Shown: positions 14,798-62,260 of the stretch, piece by piece | Layout: every line of letters begins with the position of its first letter | Numbering within the stretch: the stretch's first letter is position 1 | IMG/VR virus record: IMGVR_UViG_3300036846_000743 | Coordinates: 162,074-226,073 of that record | Direction: 5' to 3' (one strand) | Length of the DNA stretch: 64,000 nt | Notes under the pieces: generated by a model | Told to the model about the DNA's origin: nothing | What the model saw: the letters and a program-made list of their open reading frames with translations, nothing else | Databases searched by the model: none | Position numbers and translations under genes: made by a program

Positions 14798-15099
14798 GGA
14801 AGATGCTCCTTGGCAGTTAAAGTACGTTCGATCATCTCGTCCTTGAGCCGATGCCTGGCCACTGTGAACCAGAGAATCTTGTACTCATGATTGGTCAGGA
14901 GATGGTCCATCTCCCCCGGAGTGGTGACCCAGAGAGCACGCGTATGCGCCTCGTTCCGCGGTCCGGGATTCCGGATCACCGCAATCAAGGCGAACCGCTC
15001 GCTCTCGGGCCACTCCGGAGCACGATGAACCTTCCCGATCATCACGCTGCGAGCCCAGTCAGCCGGCTCAACTGATAACTGAAGCAGATGCACGGCCAT
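14794..15099 (-). CDS. hypothetical protein
   Basis: 101 aa; overlaps both neighbours in the operon. Confidence 0.6.
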   Translation of the reverse strand: MAVHLLQLSVEPADWARSVMIGKVHRAPEWPESERFALIAVIRNPGPRNEAHTRALWVTTPGEMDHLLTNHEYKILWFTVARHRLKDEMIERTLTAKEHLP

Positions 15100-16348
15100 G
15101 ATCGAAACTCCCTGTTGGCCGCCCCATAGCCGGCACTACCCGGCTGGCCCAGATCCGCTTGGTGGAATACAGATCCACATGACCGCCAGGGAACTGCCAG
15201 GTCAATGCGTCAGGCCGCGGCGGGATGTTATAACGCACCACGCGCACACCAGTCGCATGCGACAGGGTCATGGGCAAGTGCGGATCATCGAGGGCCGCCT
15301 TGATGTCCGCGTCCGTGGCCATCTCGCTGTTGCGGCCCAGCTCCTGCCTCATCATTCCGACCAGCACCTCGATGATCGTGTCATTGGCTTCGAGAGCATC
15401 GAGAAGCTGTCGATCCAAGTTCGCGATATCGGGAGCCGCCATGAACTGCGGATAGCTCAGATCGGCTGGGAAGAAGCTGTTCGCTCTCAGCACCGTGAAG
15501 GCCGGGTTGCGAAATGGCCTCCCGAGTACAGTTGCCATGTTGGCGTAGACTCGATGCGGTCGCTGAGCGCCAGGGTTCCACCGGCCATCGCCAAAATACC
15601 ACAGTCCCTTCCATTGCCCTGATGAGCCGGCCTCATCAGGACGAGTACTGCCGTCAACGGGATGCACAGGGTAGTCGCCCTGGCGCGCAAAGTAGCGTTG
15701 CGGCAGCAAAATACAACCATTCTCCTCGAAGCTGTGAGCCCAGAAGAAGTCCTCCAGTTCCTGATCGGTGATGTCGTCGATTGCCTTACCAAGAGCAGAC
15801 GATGCCTCACGCTTGATCACGGCTCCTCGCTCGAAGACGGGTCTTTGAAGAAACGCACAGTAGAATTCCGGCAGGGTAGGCTGATGGGGGATTGGTTCAT
15901 CAGCCTCGACGACCCTGTTGGCCTCTCGGGCCAGCATGACCGCCAGGTGAGCCGCAGTCTTGTTCTGGTCGGGGTCAAGATGGTGGCGACACGCGCCCCA
16001 TGTGCTGCGAGGCAGCGCGCAGTCAAAAACTGCTGGGCTGCACTCCTCGTTCTGCTTCGCGTCCACGTAGACTCGGCCACTATGGACATCAAAGGCGAAC
16101 TTCAGCGTGAGTAGAATGACCGACCGCTGCGGGGTTTTGGCATCTGGCCGCATTGTACGCTGCCAGCGCATGACGAACATCGTCGGGCCGGATAAAGGAG
16201 TAAGTCCGTGCTCGGCGAACGAGTCGCTCCGGCGGCTCGGTGGCCGGAACCCGATCGCGATGAGCCCGGAAAGTGTGGTCCAGCGGACCTCGTCAACAGA
16301 CGTAAGCTCAGGAAAAGCGCTAGACTTGAGACGTCTGGGATTGAACAA
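15068..16348 (-). CDS. hypothetical protein
   Basis: 426 aa; AGGAGG RBS plus TTG. Confidence 0.75.
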   Translation of the reverse strand: MFNPRRLKSSAFPELTSVDEVRWTTLSGLIAIGFRPPSRRSDSFAEHGLTPLSGPTMFVMRWQRTMRPDAKTPQRSVILLTLKFAFDVHSGRVYVDAKQNEECSPAVFDCALPRSTWGACRHHLDPDQNKTAAHLAVMLAREANRVVEADEPIPHQPTLPEFYCAFLQRPVFERGAVIKREASSALGKAIDDITDQELEDFFWAHSFEENGCILLPQRYFARQGDYPVHPVDGSTRPDEAGSSGQWKGLWYFGDGRWNPGAQRPHRVYANMATVLGRPFRNPAFTVLRANSFFPADLSYPQFMAAPDIANLDRQLLDALEANDTIIEVLVGMMRQELGRNSEMATDADIKAALDDPHLPMTLSHATGVRVVRYNIPPRPDALTWQFPGGHVDLYSTKRIWASRVVPAMGRPTGSFDHGRASASVIS

Positions 16349-16402
16349 GATAAGATCCTCCTGACTGACATCCCCTCATTAGTCTCGTACCGAAATGTAG
16401 GG

Positions 16403-16430
16403 TCAGTGCATGGCGGATCACCTCCTTCCT
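16403..16430 (-). promoter_or_regulatory. extended Shine-Dalgarno plus Met-His-stop minigene
   Basis: Minus strand reads AGGAAGGAGGTGATCC-GCC-ATG-CAC-TGA. Confidence 0.6.
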
Positions 16431-16508
16431 TGGCAAGGGCGCAGAATCTCCGGGCACACCGCCGGATAGCGCTGCTCATTAGTAGATGACAGGTTTTGCT
16501 ACGAATCT

Positions 16509-17099
16509 TCAGTCGTCGTCTTCGACGCCTTCATCTTCATCTTCGTCGTCATTGCCTTCATCATCGAAGTCATCATCATCGTCAGCGTGATCGAGCACTT
16601 CCACGTCGGGCGCAAGTATCTCGACAACGCTGGCTGCCGGCGCAGGGACCGGCTGGAGAATGGGTGGGACCGGGCCGATAAAGCCATCCACGTCAACTTC
16701 AGTCTCGTCATCACTCACGAACAAGGGATAGCGGCCTTCCGGTGCTACCAGATAATGCCCGCCTCGGGATGGCAGCAAGAGATCGCCGCGAAAGGCAAAC
16801 ATCTGCCCGCCCTGCGAGCGACGTGCACGCATCGTGGTCAATAGTTCATCGAATGTGTTCAGGGTCGTGACAGTCCCTTTGCCGTAGTCGTCGGGGACAT
16901 GCACGAGGTGGCACTTGGCCGGCGGGGTCAAGAGCGACGCCCTGGCGCGTTGCAGCGCATCAGCTAGCAAGTCCAGAAGCATGATCGGGCGACTGGACAG
17001 GTAAAGTCGCAGCAGCTCGGTCATCTGATCGAGATCATCGGCACTGGATTGATCACCGTCAAGCGACGGTTCCTGGATCTGCTCTTGAGCTACGCTCAC
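16509..17099 (-). CDS. hypothetical protein with highly acidic tail
   Basis: 196 aa; ends DDDDDFDDEGNDDEDEDEGVEDDD. Confidence 0.7.
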   Translation of the reverse strand: MSVAQEQIQEPSLDGDQSSADDLDQMTELLRLYLSSRPIMLLDLLADALQRARASLLTPPAKCHLVHVPDDYGKGTVTTLNTFDELLTTMRARRSQGGQMFAFRGDLLLPSRGGHYLVAPEGRYPLFVSDDETEVDVDGFIGPVPPILQPVPAPAASVVEILAPDVEVLDHADDDDDFDDEGNDDEDEDEGVEDDD

Positions 17100-17815
17100 G
17101 GGATCTTCTCCTCGGCTTCCTGGATCTTCTGTTTGATGTCGGCTGGATCGGCCGGCTTCACTTCTAGCGTCTCCATGAGCGGGGCCATGTCACCGGCCAG
17201 GATAGCCTCGCCGACTCGTTTTGTCTCCGGGCGAATCGGCAGATGAACGACCGCCGCCGTATCTTGCGGGTTAGCCGTTCGCGCTGCGAAGCCCACGTGA
17301 TAGTGGGTCCCGTCGATCCCGAAGGCCGTGATGGTTATCGTGGGGGGCCTGGGTTCCGCGATGATCGCGTTGTAGACGGCCAGGTAGTCGACGATCTCCA
17401 GCTCCTGCGCAACCGGCTGCGCATAACGGCCCCGTTTGCGATCGACCAGGCCGGTCTGCGCGATGAAGGTCCGCAGATCTTCCCAGTACTCCAGGGGCGT
17501 GGCAAGCAGCACATTCTCGACCTCATGCGGATCCGCTTTCCAGCCTGGCGGGCACATGCCGCTGAAGAATGGCCTTATGGACTGGAGTCGCATCACCGAG
17601 CAATCTGGGTCTCCGTGACGGCTGGTGAACTCAGCGACAATATCGCGATCAAGCCCGCCGTAAGTGTAGATGCATCCGACCGAGAAAAACATCCAGTCAG
17701 ACGTCATCTCCTTCCAGCTGCCCGCAGCTCGCAACGTGTCGTCACAGTGAAGCGCGATCCGGTTGGTCCGATCGACTCCTGAGATACCTTCGGGCAAGAG
17801 CGGCTTCCATCCCAT
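17096..17815 (-). CDS. hypothetical protein
   Basis: AGGAG RBS; 239 aa. Confidence 0.7.
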   Translation of the reverse strand: MGWKPLLPEGISGVDRTNRIALHCDDTLRAAGSWKEMTSDWMFFSVGCIYTYGGLDRDIVAEFTSRHGDPDCSVMRLQSIRPFFSGMCPPGWKADPHEVENVLLATPLEYWEDLRTFIAQTGLVDRKRGRYAQPVAQELEIVDYLAVYNAIIAEPRPPTITITAFGIDGTHYHVGFAARTANPQDTAAVVHLPIRPETKRVGEAILAGDMAPLMETLEVKPADPADIKQKIQEAEEKIP

Positions 17816-32746: not shown

Positions 32747-32921
32747 GGGTCACCTCCTTCTTAGCCGATGCCGACGATGGCAGCATTGGGCATCTGGGCA
32801 AGCTATCGTCACCTCCTTGCGGACTAACTTGACTCCCTGGATGTTCGCGCAGTGCTGCGTACGGCATCACGATCAATGTATGATCTGACCACGATAATGC
32901 ACAAGAACTTTCGTCCACCAA

Positions 32922-35368: not shown

Positions 35369-35956
35369 TCAGCATGTTTCACTGGCTCGGTTGGCTTCTC
35401 GTGGCTCACGGCCCGCCGGGATGGTTCTGCATAGTATATGACACGAAAACGCGTCAGCGTTAAGTGGTTTGCCATCGGGCTTCCAGACGGGTGGCCCAGG
35501 CACCAGTCCCGGAAAAACTCGATCTCCTTCATACTCACCTTCGACGAGCGTCAAGTAGATCTTGTTGGCGAAAGGCAGAAAGATCTCGTAGACCTGGGCC
35601 CCGCCAATCACGACCGCGTCGGTCGCGCCGTTGCCGTTCCAGCCCCAAGCTGCCATATCCAGGGCCTCGAGCGGATTCCTGGCCCAGCGAGTCCCCTGTA
35701 CATCAACCCCGGCCGACGGCCAACTTTCATCCCACGGCCGCCTGCTCAGCACGACATTGACCCGCTTCTCGAGCGGCTGACCATTGCGCGTCAGGATCGA
35801 GTCGTAAGTCCGTCTACCCATGATGAGCGACTGGTGCAGCGTATGCTCGCGGAACCACTTGACGTCCTTGATATCGGGCCAGGGCAAACTGCCATCCCGA
35901 CCGATCACTCCTTGTTTGGTCATTGCCACGATGATCGCAAGATTGCGAATATGCAC
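35369..35956 (-). CDS. folA: dihydrofolate reductase
   Basis: VIGRDGSLPW, D..WF...T, MGRRTYDSI, PL..R.N.VLS and IGGAQVY. Confidence 0.95.
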   Translation of the reverse strand: MHIRNLAIIVAMTKQGVIGRDGSLPWPDIKDVKWFREHTLHQSLIMGRRTYDSILTRNGQPLEKRVNVVLSRRPWDESWPSAGVDVQGTRWARNPLEALDMAAWGWNGNGATDAVVIGGAQVYEIFLPFANKIYLTLVEGEYEGDRVFPGLVPGPPVWKPDGKPLNADAFSCHILCRTIPAGREPREANRASETC

Positions 35957-46874: not shown

Positions 46875-47627
46875 TCAATCCGTGTCGATCGATCGAACGC
46901 GTTGTGCTTCTGCCAGCGTATAGGTGTCTTCCGGCGGAGGAATACCTTCCTCGATCGGCGTATCTTCCAGGCCCTGCTGCGGGGAGCTTTCCTGGATGCC
47001 ATCCTTCATGAAAAGGGCCATGATGCCAATGACTACGTCATTGGCACCAGTGTCGCGGCATGTAACCACGTACTCACCGTCATCGAGCTTGCCTGAGAGC
47101 CGCGTGCTGTAAAAAAAGCCCGATGGCTTGCCCGGCGTAGCTGTGGGCATACCCGCACGCGGGGCGACCGGCAAGACCGAAAACTTCTTGCTGGCAAAGT
47201 CGTAGAAAAAGTTGTCTTTAACCCTCCGGATCGAGTAGATCAGGACGGTCTTCCTGTAAAACCAGAACACGATGTCCACGCCGCGCCTCCCGAGTGGGCC
47301 TTCCCAGGGCGGCTGTGAAAAGGCTTTGACGCCCGGATCGGACTGGAAGCCCATGACCTGAAGCGCCGTCTTCACGTCCTGCTTCGTAATGCCACCGCAT
47401 ACCGTTTGATCGTGCGTACCGGGCAAAGGAAAGTCCACGCCAACAGTATGTGACGGGACTTCCCCGAAAACTTCAGTCTTCCATTGGTGCACCGACATGT
47501 GGTCCTTGATCTGGCCCACGTACGGCGCAATCGCGTCCACGAACGAGCGGTCGCCGGTCAGCTCCGCAAGGAGCTGACCGGGCTTGGGCACGATGATGCG
47601 CTTCTCATCACTTTCCGAGGTACTCAT
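46875..47627 (-). CDS. hypothetical protein ending in a variant tag (RVRSIDTD)
   Basis: 250 aa; overlaps the polymerase stop region. Confidence 0.7.
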   Translation of the reverse strand: MSTSESDEKRIIVPKPGQLLAELTGDRSFVDAIAPYVGQIKDHMSVHQWKTEVFGEVPSHTVGVDFPLPGTHDQTVCGGITKQDVKTALQVMGFQSDPGVKAFSQPPWEGPLGRRGVDIVFWFYRKTVLIYSIRRVKDNFFYDFASKKFSVLPVAPRAGMPTATPGKPSGFFYSTRLSGKLDDGEYVVTCRDTGANDVVIGIMALFMKDGIQESSPQQGLEDTPIEEGIPPPEDTYTLAEAQRVRSIDTD

Positions 47628-50600
47628 CCGGGATCCCCAAGGACCGACCGCGCTCCGGATCGATCGCCTGTCCCCAATTCAGGAAAACCGAGCAATCGAC
47701 CTTGAAGTGATAGGGCTTCTCCAAGCAACGCCCGCCGCGCCCGGCAGCCTCCATCTTCTTCTTGTCGTCAAAGCGGATGCCATCAAGCGTTCGTGGCATG
47801 ATCTCCACGTCATCAGACAGCGCCAAGACGACCGCTTCGCGAACCTCCTCGATATGCGGAATTTTCACCTCCAGCATAACAGCGTCATGGATCTGGAGCA
47901 CGGTCCGGAACTTGTTGCGGAACCCGTTTATCCGGAGCTGGCGCAGGTTATACATGCCCAGCAAGATAGCGTCTGCCACCAGGTTCTGGATCGGATAGTT
48001 CTTGGCCGATCGGCCCTGGTCAGCCTGGGCTGACTTATCGTCAACCCTGCCGAACCGCCGCATCCGACCGAATGCTCCGACCAGATATGGCGTCCTGCTG
48101 CCAGGCCGCGCTTCGCATTCGGCCAGGAACGAACTGGCGGCCGGATAACGCTTGTAGTAGTTATCGATCAGCCGCTGACACTCCTGTACTGAAACATCAG
48201 CACCCTCTTCGCGGCACTGTCGCGACAGTGCCTCGGCACTACGCCCGTAAGGAACGCCGAACCTCACGTTCTTCGCAGCCACGCGCAGCCCAGGCTTGCC
48301 CAGGGCCTTGAGCGCCTTCTTGTTCGGGTCGCAGCTCAGCTTAAACGCCTCGACGGCTGTCGAAGAATGAAGATCCAGGAAGTCCGGATCATCCTCCGGA
48401 AGCATGGCCCGATTGACGTCCTCGATCATCTTCTCATCCCCGGACTCCCAGGCCAGGGCGGCAATCTCGGCCGCGATGATGTCGAACTCCATGAGCACCG
48501 TGGGCACATCGTCCCATTCACCGGCCGTCACGATCGACCGGATCGGGTTCTTGTAGAGAGGCGCACCCAGGATCTTGGTGTAGTCACCAATCACCTCGCC
48601 GTCTTCCACGTGTCCGAGGATGCGCGCGTAGTCATCCTCGCGGCGCTTGGCCAGGTTCTGGAGATTGGGGCCCGAACTCGAGCAACGACCCGTCTCAACG
48701 GGGTAGAACCGGCTGCGCACCCGGCTGTCCCGCGTATTGACGTAGCTCAGGAAGCCGCCGTCGAACTCGTCCGCCTCGTCGAAGACCACACTGCCGTTGG
48801 CTTCGGCACCCATGGCCTCGCCGATCTTGGGTGGACGAAGTACCGACTGGAGCACCTGGCGGATGTAACGGATGTCCCGCAGCTTCTTGACCCGATCATC
48901 CGTGTGGGCAAAGATCCCCAGAACTTCCTTGTCCACGGCCGGCACGAGCAATTGCTTATCCCTCGGGTTAAGGGTACCCCACGATCTCGACGGCTTACCC
49001 GTAGTCTTGATCGGCACCTTGCCGAGTTTCATCTCGGGATCGGGCATTTGCGGCCGGTTCTTGCCGGTTTTCTTGTCAATGACACGACTGAACTCCTCGC
49101 CGAAAAGCCACGCGCGCACCTGTGCCGGCGAGTTGGGATTGAATGATGGCCAGTTCAATTCCTCGCGGAGCGACGTGGTCAGCCGTTCCTTGACCAGCTC
49201 GAAGACCTTGATCAGCTCCTTGCCGCGATCGACATCGACTGTCACGCCGGTCTCTTCCATCTCCAGGAAGGTGAGCCCGGCCAGCATCGTTCGCCAGTAT
49301 GGTTCCCGTGAACTCTTGTGCCAGACATCCTGATCCAGGAATCCGTCACCATCGTTCAGGGTCCGGGCGAAGTTGAACCTCCAGAACAACCGAAGCGTCG
49401 CGTCGGCGTCATAGAGTGCGTAGGGCACAAGCACGTTATCGGGGATATCACCATATCCGCCCAGGTCCCGGAGTTTGATCCCCATTTCCTTGGCAATCCG
49501 GACCTTGGCTTCCTCCACATCGACGCTCCAGCGCGGGATCGTCGTCCAGCGCATGGCCAGCTGCTCCAGATCGAAGCTCTCCGTAGCCTCGAAGACTGCA
49601 TGCGTCATGTAGCCGGTGTCGAAGCCGCCCGTGTAACGGGTCATCTCCCATGGTTCGTGCGGCTCCACGAGCTGGTTACGGTCAACAAGGTCTCGCGATA
49701 CCAGTACTGGTGCCCGTTTCTCGGCCTCGGCATTCGCATCCTCCTCGATCTGGAACTTGGCAATCTTCTTGCGGTATGCAACACCATTGATCCGCTTCGG
49801 CAGTCGTTCCCTCCTCTGCTCCTCGGTCTCGCCTTTCGGCCCTGGTTCCTGCGGCGACGGGACCGTCCAGAGCGGAGCGAAGTCAATCCCCAGAAACTCG
49901 CGGATCCAGGGAATGTCCGCTTTGAAGAAGTGACCGCCGTGGCGGGTCTTGATGTGGATCTCGCCGTTGCTATGTCGGCCATCGATCAGGCGCCGAAGCT
50001 CGCGAGCGATCAACTCGGTGGTAGGACGCCCGAGGCCACCTCCTTGATCCGACAGGCCAACACAGGTGGCCTTCATGGGAGCCCTCCTGTAGTTGCCCCC
50101 GACAGAGAACTGGATGGTTCGCAGGTACGACCCAGGATCGCCAGGATGGCGGCCATGCCATTCCGCGTCCCAGGCGATCGGCAGGTCACCGTCGATCTCG
50201 GAGTCCCATTCACGACTGGCCTTCTCAAGGATATTGTCTATCACCCTGGCCAGATGCTTCGGCGTGTAGCAGACCGAATGATCCCTCGTGCTCTCGATAT
50301 CCTGCGGCCGCTCGCCCTTGATCAGCTCGGTGAGCTGCCTGAGTCCTGATAGCAGATCGGGATACGCCTCCTGCATGCGGAAGATGTAAGCCGGGTGCGG
50401 CATGCCTATGATCTGGACCGTCTGCTCGCCGTAAGAGCCCAGATCATCGAAAGCTGCGTGGGTCTCGGCATCGAACGGCGGGAAGTTGTACTTCATTTCG
50501 ACGACCCGGCCAGTCATGTTGCCGACGGTGAAACCCTTACCCAGGACCGCCCTGATTGCCTCGGTGCCGAGACAGGCGATGAACTTGGGTCGGACCAGGA

Positions 50601-51258
50601 GGATCTCCTGCCAGAGCAGCGGCGCGCAGTTCTTGAGCCACGCCTGCTGCATGGTCCCCGACGTGGGGTCCAGCCTGTTGAACTTCACGGTGTTGGTGAC
50701 ATACCAGTTGCTCCGGGCCTCCAGCGAGACTCCAAGCTCGCGAAGCGCACGGTGCAGTGGTTCGGACGACTGGCCGATAAAATTCTGCTCAAAGGTAAGC
50801 TCCTCAGCACCTGGATGCTTACCGATGATCATGACGTCGGAGTGATAACGCGGGCCGGCAGCTTTCCTGTATTCGACCCATTCGTAGTCCTGGCTGTTTA
50901 CCGAGCTGTTCCTCGAGTTGAAGAACGGCGGCAATGACCAGCGCCCACCCCGCAGGAATGTGGCGTTGACGAACTGGCCCTTGAAGCTGACCTGAAGTTG
51001 CCACTTGCGCTTGTAGAGCGCATTGCGGTAGAGATGTTCCAGGCCGATCATGGCCGGATCGTCGCGCGCCATCTTGGCCGAGACCTTGGATTCGGTCAGC
51101 TGGAGTACGGTCCTGGCAAAGTCAGGACCAGCCGCCGGAATGAGCGGATGGTCCATTGGCACCAGATGCTTCCATGCGTAGCGAGCCCAGCGTTGCTCGC
51201 GGGACAAATTCTTGACGTCGTCGAAAGTGGTGGAATCATCGTCTTTGGTCGTGGTCAT
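47608..51258 (-). CDS. family A DNA polymerase with N-terminal family-4 UDG-like domain and 3'-5' exonuclease
   Basis: UDG-like GKHPG..E...NFIG, TNTVKF, HPAY; exo DAEW, KADI, YALYD; pol TGRCSS..PNLQN, D....E, R..AK...FG..YG, NYPIQ, IHD; start after AGGGAG. Confidence 0.92.
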   Translation of the reverse strand: MTTTKDDDSTTFDDVKNLSREQRWARYAWKHLVPMDHPLIPAAGPDFARTVLQLTESKVSAKMARDDPAMIGLEHLYRNALYKRKWQLQVSFKGQFVNATFLRGGRWSLPPFFNSRNSSVNSQDYEWVEYRKAAGPRYHSDVMIIGKHPGAEELTFEQNFIGQSSEPLHRALRELGVSLEARSNWYVTNTVKFNRLDPTSGTMQQAWLKNCAPLLWQEILLVRPKFIACLGTEAIRAVLGKGFTVGNMTGRVVEMKYNFPPFDAETHAAFDDLGSYGEQTVQIIGMPHPAYIFRMQEAYPDLLSGLRQLTELIKGERPQDIESTRDHSVCYTPKHLARVIDNILEKASREWDSEIDGDLPIAWDAEWHGRHPGDPGSYLRTIQFSVGGNYRRAPMKATCVGLSDQGGGLGRPTTELIARELRRLIDGRHSNGEIHIKTRHGGHFFKADIPWIREFLGIDFAPLWTVPSPQEPGPKGETEEQRRERLPKRINGVAYRKKIAKFQIEEDANAEAEKRAPVLVSRDLVDRNQLVEPHEPWEMTRYTGGFDTGYMTHAVFEATESFDLEQLAMRWTTIPRWSVDVEEAKVRIAKEMGIKLRDLGGYGDIPDNVLVPYALYDADATLRLFWRFNFARTLNDGDGFLDQDVWHKSSREPYWRTMLAGLTFLEMEETGVTVDVDRGKELIKVFELVKERLTTSLREELNWPSFNPNSPAQVRAWLFGEEFSRVIDKKTGKNRPQMPDPEMKLGKVPIKTTGKPSRSWGTLNPRDKQLLVPAVDKEVLGIFAHTDDRVKKLRDIRYIRQVLQSVLRPPKIGEAMGAEANGSVVFDEADEFDGGFLSYVNTRDSRVRSRFYPVETGRCSSSGPNLQNLAKRREDDYARILGHVEDGEVIGDYTKILGAPLYKNPIRSIVTAGEWDDVPTVLMEFDIIAAEIAALAWESGDEKMIEDVNRAMLPEDDPDFLDLHSSTAVEAFKLSCDPNKKALKALGKPGLRVAAKNVRFGVPYGRSAEALSRQCREEGADVSVQECQRLIDNYYKRYPAASSFLAECEARPGSRTPYLVGAFGRMRRFGRVDDKSAQADQGRSAKNYPIQNLVADAILLGMYNLRQLRINGFRNKFRTVLQIHDAVMLEVKIPHIEEVREAVVLALSDDVEIMPRTLDGIRFDDKKKMEAAGRGGRCLEKPYHFKVDCSVFLNWGQAIDPERGRSLGIPDEYLGK

Positions 51259-51310
51259 CGCAGTCTCCCTTGTCAGCCAATGATAGGCATGCGCGGGAAA
51301 GGGATCGAAG

Positions 51311-52438
51311 TCAGGCAAAGCTGGCGATGTCGATCCCCTTCGCATCGCCAGCGGCGTAGATCAGGTTCCAGATCGTTTCATAGTCGAAATTCCCAGGGTC
51401 TTTCCCGTGGGGTAAGTGGACTCGCACGGCTGCCCCACCGGTCTTGGCATAACTGTTCCCCAGGCTGGTGAAAGCCAGAGCCAGCCGCCGCTGTTCTTTG
51501 TAGTCTTGATCGGCGTCAGGATCAAGCATGAGCACCAGGCAACGGGGCTCGCTGCTGTAAGCTGTCAGGCTCGCAAGCCTGAACATCTGGTGCGCCGTGA
51601 TTGACTTGCCCAGCAGCGCCACCGCAGCGTCGCCGACGGTCCAGACGCCGGTCACGCCTTCGACCACAACGATGATCCGGCCCTGGGATGCTCGATCCCA
51701 ATTGTAGAGGATCCTGCGCTTCTTCATGCCCGGCAGGTTGTAATACTTCCGGACCCCACAGGCGCTCCAGTTCAGTTCGCCGATGTAACGGGCCTGCCAG
51801 CCGACCAGCTGGTGTTCCATCTCGATGGGGACCACGAGCCGGCCCTGGACCTGGGAAAACTCGAATGCCTTGCGGCAATAACACAGGCCATACTTGCGGC
51901 CCAGCTTGGCCGCGTCGTAGCCGCGATCCTCGATGTATCGGACCGCCTGGTGATCGAACGACAACTCATCCAGACGAATAACCCGGCCTGGCATCTCGAC
52001 CGCGACGAGCGGCCCTTCATCGCTCCGGTTACCCGGCCGTGTTGCCAGCAGAAGGTTCCGCTCCCCGGCGCTCATCTCGGCACGGAACAACCGGATCTCA
52101 AGATCCTGTCGGTTCTCGACAGCCCGGCGATCACGACCTGACAGGCAACCCTCGTTGTAGCAGTTGACCAGCCAGTTGATCGTGCGACCATCATCGTCCA
52201 GCGAGCCGTAGCAATAATGGAACCAGAGCCGCTGACGGCTATCGCCGCAGTAAGGGCAGTTGACCCTGTAATACTCGCCCGACTGGATGATGTCCCACTC
52301 CATTCGCTTTTCGACGGAGTTCCAGTGTCGGCTGGCAATGACGACCTCCTCGCCTTCGTTGGCGATGGTGATCTCGCCGAACGCGCGGCGAAGCAATTCG
52401 TAAAGGCCAGGACAAAGCGGGCCGGTGAACTGCATCAT
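51311..52438 (-). CDS. DNA primase (Zn finger + TOPRIM)
   Basis: CPYCGD...CYNEGC, VVVEG and LMLDPD. Confidence 0.85.
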   Translation of the reverse strand: MMQFTGPLCPGLYELLRRAFGEITIANEGEEVVIASRHWNSVEKRMEWDIIQSGEYYRVNCPYCGDSRQRLWFHYCYGSLDDDGRTINWLVNCYNEGCLSGRDRRAVENRQDLEIRLFRAEMSAGERNLLLATRPGNRSDEGPLVAVEMPGRVIRLDELSFDHQAVRYIEDRGYDAAKLGRKYGLCYCRKAFEFSQVQGRLVVPIEMEHQLVGWQARYIGELNWSACGVRKYYNLPGMKKRRILYNWDRASQGRIIVVVEGVTGVWTVGDAAVALLGKSITAHQMFRLASLTAYSSEPRCLVLMLDPDADQDYKEQRRLALAFTSLGNSYAKTGGAAVRVHLPHGKDPGNFDYETIWNLIYAAGDAKGIDIASFA

Positions 52439-61886: not shown

Positions 61887-62011
61887 TTGACAGTTTGGCC
61901 GCTCCCTGGTGACCATGAGGATACAGCCTGGTTGGGCCCTCCAAAGTGCGCCGACTGGATGGCGCTCCCCAACAAGGATGGACCATGGATGTTTCGCACG
62001 GAGGAAGTCTC
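61887..62011 (+). promoter_or_regulatory. putative csrA promoter and GGA-rich leader (CsrA-binding sites)
   Basis: TTGACA at 61887 with a weak -10 (GACCAT); seven GGA at 61919, 61957, 61976, 61980, 61987, 62000 and 62003. Confidence 0.65.
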
Positions 62012-62260
62012 ATGCTAGTCCTATCGCGAAAAATTGGCGAGCGGATCCACATCAATGATGATGTCGTCATCACGGTGATCCGGATCCAAGGGGACAAGGT
62101 GCGCCTCGGTATCGAAGCCCCTCGCATCATCCCGGTGCACCGGGCAGAAGTCCTGGAACGGATCAGGATCGCGGCGGCCCTGGCGCCACAGCCCGATACA
62201 TCGGCTCCTGGCATGCCTGCATCTGAAGAGCGGCCTACCAGAGTGGCTCGCCGTCCCTAG
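62012..62260 (+). CDS. csrA: carbon storage regulator CsrA/RsmA
   Basis: MLVLSRKIGERIHINDDVVITVIRIQGDKVRLGIEAPRIIPVHRAEV; GGAGG RBS. Confidence 0.95.
   Translation: MLVLSRKIGERIHINDDVVITVIRIQGDKVRLGIEAPRIIPVHRAEVLERIRIAAALAPQPDTSAPGMPASEERPTRVARRP

Follow-up and report, generated by a model that had tools for sequence, protein, structure and literature searches.

The leader of a gene encoding a 426-amino-acid (aa) protein in a soil-metagenome jumbo phage (61% GC) carries, far upstream of the gene's own ribosome-binding site (RBS), a second Shine-Dalgarno (SD) element, SD1, which is kept in position among related phages and is followed in this phage by a Met-His-stop open reading frame (mini-ORF). 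The stretch of DNA analysed, hereafter the window, comprises the final 64 kb (64,000 nt, positions 162,074 to 226,073) of the 226,073-bp IMG/VR record IMGVR_UViG_3300036846_000743. SD1 lies on the minus strand, which carries ~233 of the 249 roughly called genes; outside the locus studied, the gene set consists of heuristic calls. We compared 13 leaders, those of the window and of 12 related phages, all metagenomic and some closely related to one another (L007 and L008, L009 and L014). By this comparison, the conserved part of the leader is the upstream SD, and the mini-ORF is a frequent add-on. We consider it about an even chance (roughly 0.5) that SD1 loads ribosomes in cis and thereby protects and/or activates the message, in the manner of a stabilising SD (STAB-SD) or a leader minigene.

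SD1 is located in the 160-nt gap that separates a 196-aa gene (stop at 16509) from the 426-aa gene on the minus strand. From SD1 to the main gene, the following elements were identified.

16415..16430, minus strand: SD1, AGGAAGGAGGTGATCC, an upstream Shine-Dalgarno element with 13 contiguous nt complementary to the 16S rRNA 3' end.
16414..16412, minus strand: GCC, the spacer between SD1 and the mini-ORF, read from the sequence.
16403..16411, minus strand: mini-ORF ATG-CAC-TGA (Met-His-stop; ATG 16411..16409, CAC 16408..16406, TGA 16405..16403), read from the sequence.
16372..16402, minus strand: variable spacer with the imperfect hairpin CCCTACAT / ATGAGGGG, unalignable among relatives, with its length kept.
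16346..16362, minus strand: main translation initiation region (TIR), consisting of AGGAGGA (16362..16356), a 7-nt spacer and the TTG start (16348..16346), conserved in relatives.
15068..16348, minus strand: downstream gene for the 426-aa protein, conserved in a jumbo-phage clade (15 homologs).

An earlier note on this DNA had described an SD, GCC and ATG-CAC-TGA on the minus strand at 16430..16403, with a match of 13 contiguous nt to the anti-SD of 16S rRNA, followed by an imperfect hairpin and a separate RBS for the 426-aa gene. The DNA reads exactly so, with the 13-nt match (AAGGAGGTGATCC) at 16427..16415, the end of SD1 66 nt ahead of the TTG, the hairpin at ~16402..16372 and AGGAGGA at 16362..16356. 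The 13-nt match is single-copy in the 226,073-bp genome, and hence also in the window, and it forms the strongest SD of this phage: its predicted hybrid with the 16S tail has an energy of -29.9 kcal/mol, compared to a median of -9.5 and a strongest value of -20.0 kcal/mol for 249 RBS regions. These energies were calculated with a generic 16S tail, the exact 16S 3' end of the host being assumed because the phage genome has no rRNA gene. Long SDs are frequent in this phage, with AAGGAGGTGA occurring five times, and SD1 is the extreme of a genuine SD-strength distribution. The significance of SD1 rests on its conservation in relatives.

The mini-ORF is arranged as GGAGG-N9-ATG-CAC-TGA (16425..16403), such that the ATG lies 9 nt past GGAGG and the stop codon 54 nt ahead of the main TTG start, in the same frame and with three stops between. 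We rejected frameshifting or readthrough from the mini-ORF into the 426-aa ORF because these three stops intervene and because the frame relation differs among relatives. A genome scan for GGAGG followed by a start codon and at most six codons gave 10 coding-strand sites and 5 sites on the opposite strand, most of them inside genes, and no other comparable intergenic site was found; a look-alike at genome position 156084 proved to be the Met-Asp-stop end of a real gene. A second leader with tandem SDs was observed at window 32747-32921 (minus strand), where two identical copies of AAGGAGGTGA stand 59 nt apart. The downstream copy serves a 167-aa gene (TTG 32746), and the upstream copy precedes the TTG of a 31-codon ORF that overlaps the start of the 167-aa gene.

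The relatives share the synteny of the locus, in the order of a 239-aa gene, a ~190-aa gene with an acidic tail, the gap and a ~430-aa gene. None of the cultured phages resembles this region, and the search for further relatives gave one contig from IMG/VR protein scans and one from a metagenome scan, while a scan of IMG/VR with the conserved block described below returned 117 chance matches with no leader among them. SD1 was present in all 13 leaders, with GGAG in 11/13 and A-N-GGA invariant; it begins 48-58 nt after the conserved block and 74-84 nt before the main start codon. Its sequences were as follows.

Window: AAGGAGGTGATCC
L009: AGAAAGGAGGT
L014: AGAAAGGAGG
L008: AGGAGGAGGG
L013: GAAGGAGGG
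L005 and L007: AAGGAGGG
L004: AAGGAGGT
L003: GAAAGGAG
L002: AAAGGAG
L006: AAGGAGA
L010 (closest relative): GAAAGGAAAAA, degenerate
L012: AGGAAGG, degenerate

Among the relatives alone, SD1 was recognisable in 11/12 (GGAG in 10/12, A-N-GGA in 12/12). A search of relatives had been suggested in the earlier note as a check on its proposal, and it yielded an upstream SD at the same leader position in these 11 of 12. Where well preserved, SD1 reads as a classical SD, from AAGGAGG up to AGAAAGGAGGT, and it equals or exceeds the main RBS in predicted strength in 7/13 leaders. The complementarity of the relatives' SD1 to the 16S tail spans 6-11 nt, with predicted energies of -7.6 to -18.2 kcal/mol; SD1 being weaker and shorter in the relatives, the 13-nt extension is specific to this phage.

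An ATG located 6-10 nt past the GGAG core of SD1 was found in 5/13 leaders, and in all five a stop codon follows within three codons.

Window: ATG CAC TGA
L003: ATG TGA (nested alternative ATG CAT TGA)
L006: ATG CCG CAC TAG
L007: ATG ACT TAG
L008: ATG CCG TAA

The stops of all five mini-ORFs lie 50-58 nt before the main start, and with respect to the main ORF the mini-ORFs are in frames 0, 1, 1, 2 and 2. In the eight remaining leaders, no ATG, GTG or TTG stands at an initiating distance from SD1. To gauge chance, the 30 nt after each core were shuffled and ATGs 5-11 nt after the core were counted; a stop within three codons is expected for ~0.09 of such ATGs, and the probability of at least five mini-ORFs in 13 leaders is ~4e-8 if they are independent and 5e-3 if they have two origins. 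On a tree of the downstream protein, carriers of a mini-ORF belong to both major clades and have close relatives that lack one; the ATGCAYTGAC shared by the window and L003 is due to common descent. Since every ORF started by SD1 is non-randomly short, selection appears to have acted on initiation at SD1, which argues that ribosomes reach SD1 in vivo.

SD1 forms part of a leader whose elements occur in a single order in 13/13 gaps: upstream stop codon, conserved block, hairpin, GGAG stretch, C-rich stretch, SD1, spacer, and main RBS with start codon. Measured from a point 22 nt ahead of the block up to the start codon, the 13 leaders span 159-173 nt, and the module as a whole is single-copy per genome by nhmmer. 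Apart from SD1 and the main TIR, the window contains the following leader elements.

16483..16497, minus strand: conserved block AAAACCTGTCATCTA, with its core CTGTCATCTA at 16492..16483, near-invariant in 13 phages.
16450..16477, minus strand: 5' hairpin H1, from the RNAalifold consensus and covariation.
16446..16454, minus strand: site A, CCCGGAGAT, a GGA(G) motif immediately 3' of the hairpin, identified by positional conservation.
16368..16373, minus strand: site C, GGATGT, which as GGAUGU resembles the CsrA consensus and stands 25 nt ahead of the main start, identified by positional conservation.

The consensus of the block across the 13 leaders is (G)AAAACCTGTCATMTA. Its CTGTCAT[AC]TA occurs four times in the genome, each time on the coding strand, intergenic and 50-190 nt upstream of a gene, so that the CTGTCATMTA block is a candidate promoter or other transcription or processing signal that would mark the start of the leader. 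The block does not resemble the sigma-70 consensus; no sigma-70 promoter was found on the coding strand in the gap, nor was any terminator-like site found on the coding strand across 15900..17200. The wider motif CTGTCAT[AC]TA / TGTCATATACT was likewise found on the coding strand only, most sites being intergenic and 50-190 nt ahead of a gene, with minus-strand sites at window 16483-16492 and 35433-35443 and at genome positions 53190, 52292, 9438 and 135894. The interval that separates the acidic-tail gene from the block is a hot spot for insertions, with a 56-aa ORF in L002 (593-763) and a family-2 glycosyltransferase gene in L003 (1256-2404); the 3' end of the latter overlaps the conserved block.

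H1 takes the form GCACCCC...GGGCGTGC in the relatives, and the window's copy is the most degenerate, folding as CCGG-N8-CCGG. In the alignment, 82.7% of H1 cells are paired, compared to 33-54% in controls with slid partners; double-sided changes occur in 6/11 pairs, and none of 500 shuffles matched the covariation score. Since G.U pairs (17) outnumber A.C mismatches (4), the structure appears to have been selected in sense-strand RNA rather than as a DNA palindrome. Of the GGA motifs that recur at fixed positions, site A (GGA, 90-105 nt ahead of the main start) is found in 10/13 leaders and site C (GGA 22-30 nt upstream) in 8/13 (GGAUG in 4, GGAUA in 2, GGAUC in 1 and GGAAUG in 1). The spacer between SD1 and the main RBS is ~50 nt long and unalignable, and it usually contains some hairpin; the distance from the end of SD1 to the start codon is 64-77 nt. 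The main RBS keeps GGAGGATC and a start codon in the relatives, mostly as AGGAGGATC with TTG, GTG or ATG. Across 16200..16650, Rfam 15 gave sub-threshold chance matches only.

Taken together, we infer the transcription start, the ribosome occupancy, the direction and mechanism of the effect, and the nuclease involved to be as follows. The leader would start at or near the CTGTCATMTA block and open with the covarying hairpin, and SD1 would stand ~75-80 nt before the start codon. A 30S subunit would dock on SD1; given an ATG behind SD1, as there is in this phage, a 70S ribosome would form, make fMet-His and terminate immediately. The ribosome at SD1 would act positively and in cis on the downstream message. 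The most likely effect would be to shield the message from 5'-end-dependent decay, as do STAB-SDs and polypurine 5' stabilisers, and/or the leader would be kept covered by ribosomes and the main initiation region open, as by the LEE1/ler and axe-txe minigenes. The immediate stop would prevent a strong start from yielding a long out-of-frame upstream ORF that runs into the main RBS.

Several features support ribosome loading at SD1. The position of SD1 is kept while the flanking spacer cannot be aligned, which favours a ribosome-loading site in general. Eight leaders have SD1 without a start codon, which is consistent with a STAB-SD-like element that depends on binding rather than translation. 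Further, a 5' stem-loop with an SD-like polypurine stretch is the combination seen in Gram-positive 5' stabilisers, which favours a stabiliser. The proposal in the earlier note of an mRNA stabiliser or parked ribosome therefore holds in part: SD1 is conserved by position and mini-ORFs occur in 4/12 relatives, but the 13-nt extent of the complementarity is not conserved. Other observations weigh against ribosome loading. SD1 is weak in L010 (-9.6 kcal/mol) and L012 (-7.6 kcal/mol), and since one of these is the closest relative, a strong SD would seem dispensable. The element of cry3A occupies the very 5' end, whereas SD1 is ~45-55 nt away from the presumed one, and in the window SD1 is predicted to be mostly base-paired (unpaired probability of 0.10). 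The fold of the whole leader is no more stable than that of shuffles (z -0.3). Finally, the invariant A-N-GGA also fits a CsrA site, and the phage encodes CsrA.

Polypurine 5' stabilisers are also found in aprE, gsiB and hbs of Bacillus subtilis and in katG of mycobacteria. The STAB-SD of cry3A in Bacillus thuringiensis is the type case as summarised in PMC12970973. Gram-positive 5' stabilisers more generally are outlined in PMC2358910 as a 5' stem-loop plus an SD-like polypurine element, and the SP82 stabiliser, cited there, is a phage-borne precedent. At hbs, initiating ribosomes block RNase J1 (PMC5737220). SD1 resembles the STAB-SD in being a 16S-complementary SD in the 5' untranslated region (UTR) far upstream of the gene's own RBS (~-125 in cry3A; -74 to -84 here), in that translation of the downstream gene does not start from it, and in that such elements are often joined to a 5' stem-loop; the absence of a start codon in 8/13 leaders is consistent with an element that would act without one. 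It differs in being coupled to an ORF of one to three codons in 5/13 leaders and in being specific to one gene and conserved across an uncultivated jumbo-phage clade.

Leader minigenes provide the second comparison. The LEE1/ler minigene of enterohaemorrhagic Escherichia coli (AUG-AAA-UAG) acts positively in cis, and its distance to the downstream start matters experimentally (PMC3262186). The mg2 minigene of axe-txe likewise acts positively in cis and is sensitive to distance, while its frame is not critical; mRNA protection was suggested as its mode of action (PMC8708949). As in these systems, an SD, an AUG, one sense codon and a stop stand in a long leader (~170 nt in LEE1; ~130-140 nt here). 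The position of the stop relative to the start matters by experiment there and is conserved here (50-58 nt), and no particular frame with respect to the main gene is kept here (0, 1, 1, 2 and 2), just as none is needed in axe-txe. The positions themselves differ, being 124 nt in LEE1 and a few nt before the SD in axe-txe; moreover, the minigene is facultative among the relatives with the SD constant.

Minimal ORFs without a product are also known from the start-stop sites of E. coli, which were mapped by retapamulin ribosome profiling, are intragenic and mildly attenuate the host ORF; in the authors' proposal, stopping at once limits the harm done by an out-of-frame start (bioRxiv 10.1101/520783). 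There, minimal ORFs after SD-like sequences bind ribosomes without yielding a product, as the mini-ORFs here would. A true ATG-TGA, however, is found only in L003, while the window has one sense codon (CAC) and its site lies in a leader. In the case of the upstream RBS (uRBS) of S. meliloti, two initiating ribosomes exclude each other by the closeness of the uRBS to the main RBS (PMC13285730). We rejected such direct occlusion for SD1, whose core and the main RBS are ~60-68 nt apart in 13/13 leaders.

The most substantial alternative concerns CsrA, which is encoded in both genomes checked, namely this phage and its closest relative (G001).

62009..62260, plus strand: phage CsrA homolog, 83 aa (MLVLSRKIGE...), PF02599, 78.8 bits, E 7e-23, model positions 1-52 of 53.

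SD1 could primarily or additionally bind the phage (or host) CsrA, which we consider unlikely, if deserving of serious attention, and which would be compatible with ribosome loading; a CsrA dimer held between an upstream site and the main RBS would compete with ribosomes at SD1, repressing translation of the 426-aa gene or setting its timing. Leaders controlled by CsrA or RsmA include those of glgC, cstA, hag and csrA itself. Like them, the leader studied here has several A(N)GGA motifs, one overlapping an SD and others upstream, in a genome that contains csrA. The phage and its closest relative encode a full-length CsrA, and the A-N-G-G-A columns remain invariant even where the SD is weak, in L010 (GAAAGGAAAAA) and L012 (CAGGAAGG). 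Four GGA sites are conserved by position (site A in 10/13 leaders, SD1 in 13/13, site C in 8/13 and the main RBS in 13/13), the density of GGA in most leaders is ~2x the intergenic median, and the GGAUGU of site C matches the CsrA core consensus from in vitro selection (SELEX). The leader of csrA itself (window 61950-62260, plus strand) has GGAUG at about -52, -33 and -22 plus a GGAGGA RBS, and these motifs and positions are kept in the closest relative (L015 locus, with csrA on its minus strand); this layout is typical of an autoregulatory leader and suggests autoregulation by the viral CsrA. Conversely, SD1 continues as GGAG(G) in 11/13 leaders, which fits the SD consensus better than the GGAU of CsrA sites, and the statistics of the mini-ORFs call for ribosomes that initiate at SD1. 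In three relatives the entire leader holds no more than 2-3 GGA motifs, and GGAUG is not enriched across the leaders of this phage. The distance of ~60-68 nt from SD1 to the main RBS is about the longest reported for bridging of two sites by CsrA. It is rather unlikely, in our view, that the leader is a composite post-transcriptional switch peculiar to one soil jumbo-phage clade, in which the 5' hairpin and a "parking" SD, with or without a mini-ORF, would hold a ribosome and the phage CsrA would bind site A, SD1, site C and the main RBS. Were it so, expression of the 426-aa gene would be set by competition between host ribosomes and viral CsrA, and STAB-SD elements and leader minigenes would be two states of one functional class. 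A search for a T4 RegB-like GGAG nuclease gave no match, and since the control genomes were likewise silent, this search was uninformative.

The remaining alternatives fit the comparative data less well. It is improbable that SD1, with or without the mini-ORF, acts negatively, as a ribosome decoy or by pairing with the main initiation region until opened. Folding of the window's leader predicts that SD1 (GGAGGUGAUCC) pairs with GGAUCUUAUCUU in the main TIR (summed pair probability of ~11.6, -31.6 kcal/mol), a pairing enabled by the GTGATCC extension of the window's SD1, and both start-stop sites and uRBSs can attenuate expression (bioRxiv 10.1101/520783; PMC13285730). This pairing is, however, absent from 12/12 relatives and modestly better than in shuffles (z -1.65), the >60 nt between SD1 and the main RBS are more than occlusion of the kind described for the uRBS would allow, and the leader minigenes characterised to date act positively. 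We thus rejected the SD1-TIR pairing as a conserved switch, given that it is specific to the window; there, a ribosome at SD1 may free the main start, the long SD may compensate for sequestration, or the pairing may be due to chance. It is quite improbable that SD1 and its ATG have no dedicated function, being either what is left of a lost gene start or an SD-like purine run that arose by chance in rapidly evolving intergenic DNA. The gap is an insertion hot spot, as the 56-aa ORF of L002 and the glycosyltransferase of L003 attest, long SDs are common in this phage, and neither the strong SD nor the mini-ORF survives in the closest relative. Against this, the insertions lie upstream of the block and never between SD1 and the main RBS, none of the 12 relatives examined has an intact ORF starting at SD1, and SD1 is kept while its flanks are unalignable, at constant distances and with mini-ORFs that are non-randomly short.

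The sense codons bear on two further proposals of the earlier note, a sensor of His-tRNA and a minigene like lambda bar that sequesters a specific tRNA as peptidyl-tRNA. Lambda bar toxicity depends on particular codons or tRNAs and on limiting Pth. The phage-borne combination of a strong SD and a two-codon ORF does resemble bar, and the last sense codon is His in three leaders (CAC in the window, CAT in the alternative ORF of L003 and CCG-CAC in L006). Across the five mini-ORFs, however, the codons are His, Pro-His, Thr, Pro or none, and 8/13 leaders have no mini-ORF, such that tRNA sequestration is not the conserved function; the sensor did not survive the comparison, and a bar-like trap is unlikely on the same grounds. 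Together, these two roles are very improbable. An amino-acid-sensing attenuator was rejected as well, there being a single His codon, no terminator/antiterminator pair and, as the sole conserved hairpin, one upstream of SD1. Hardly credible is a small leader protein that starts at a conserved ATG after the block and reads through SD1. An ATG, GTG or TTG does lie 2-3 nt after the block in 12/13 leaders, and several translations begin MHPxxxSGV, but ORF length varies widely (15-174 codons), a start is absent in L006, the frame in which the conserved GGGCGTGCCCGG is read changes from phage to phage, and the region shows RNA-type covariation with G.U pairs.

The gene upstream of the leader is also conserved in position.

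16509..17099, minus strand: upstream gene, 196 aa, with a poly-acidic C-terminal tail, from the ORF list; the leader begins directly after its stop codon.

A syntenic counterpart of ~185-195 aa is present in all relatives. The C-terminus of the 196-aa protein is a long Asp/Glu run (DDDDDFDDEGNDDEDEDEGVEDDD), and the acidic tail is kept in all relatives; the protein has no match in Pfam or PHROG. The 426-aa protein, which likewise has no Pfam or PHROG match, has 15 homologs of 46-72% identity in a word-based protein search, mostly from large contigs; the 12 related leaders compared here come from the DNA of 12 of these. Its AlphaFold2 (AF2) model is confident, with a predicted local distance difference test score (pLDDT) of 81.5, and has no PDB match (none at E <= 0.001 with Foldseek; best VIA-align Z of 3.7), such that its fold may be undescribed. 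The database call for this gene (P0001) is 370 aa long and begins at an internal Met. This call is too short as judged by the alignment, which supports the TTG start of the 426-aa ORF because homologs are 421-459 aa long, R35, R39 and F44 are invariant and the RBS is conserved.

With respect to the phage itself, IMG/VR classes the window's own 226-kb record as complete and linear. In contrast, it lists G001 (IMGVR_UViG_3300036791_001907) as a 161-kb "provirus" cut from a 227.7-kb contig, that of L010; this trimming is probably an artefact of unfamiliar jumbo-phage genes. No prophage copy of the phage was found in GTDB genomes, and no tRNA genes were found within the 64-kb window. The closest neighbours of its CsrA in the Atlas are from Actinomycetota and Planctomycetota, a weak hint at the host. 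A 1245-aa protein (window 47608-51345, minus strand) has a uracil-DNA-glycosylase-superfamily domain (residues 164-326) fused to a family-A DNA polymerase, which is ~25% identical to the polymerases of T5-like phages, consistent with a deeply novel phage clade.

Orphan upstream SDs and two-codon leader minigenes have been dissected in a handful of cases, each in one organism. The type of element described here, an upstream SD stabiliser or leader minigene, is known, and its setting is new. What this case adds is the evolutionary series that joins SD-only and SD-plus-mini-ORF forms, together with the co-encoded CsrA. Occurring as homologs across 13 diverged jumbo phages, the leader provides a natural mutational series for the effects of parked ribosomes, in which the position of the SD, the distances and the 5' hairpin are constant while the start codon, the sense codons and the length of the 16S complementarity are optional. 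This pattern among the leaders suggests that SD-only stabilisers and mini-ORFs may be interchangeable solutions. The co-encoded phage CsrA would link viral RNA-binding regulators to the GGA and SD motifs of leaders, and the leader itself is a compact candidate for an expression-enhancing 5' UTR module.

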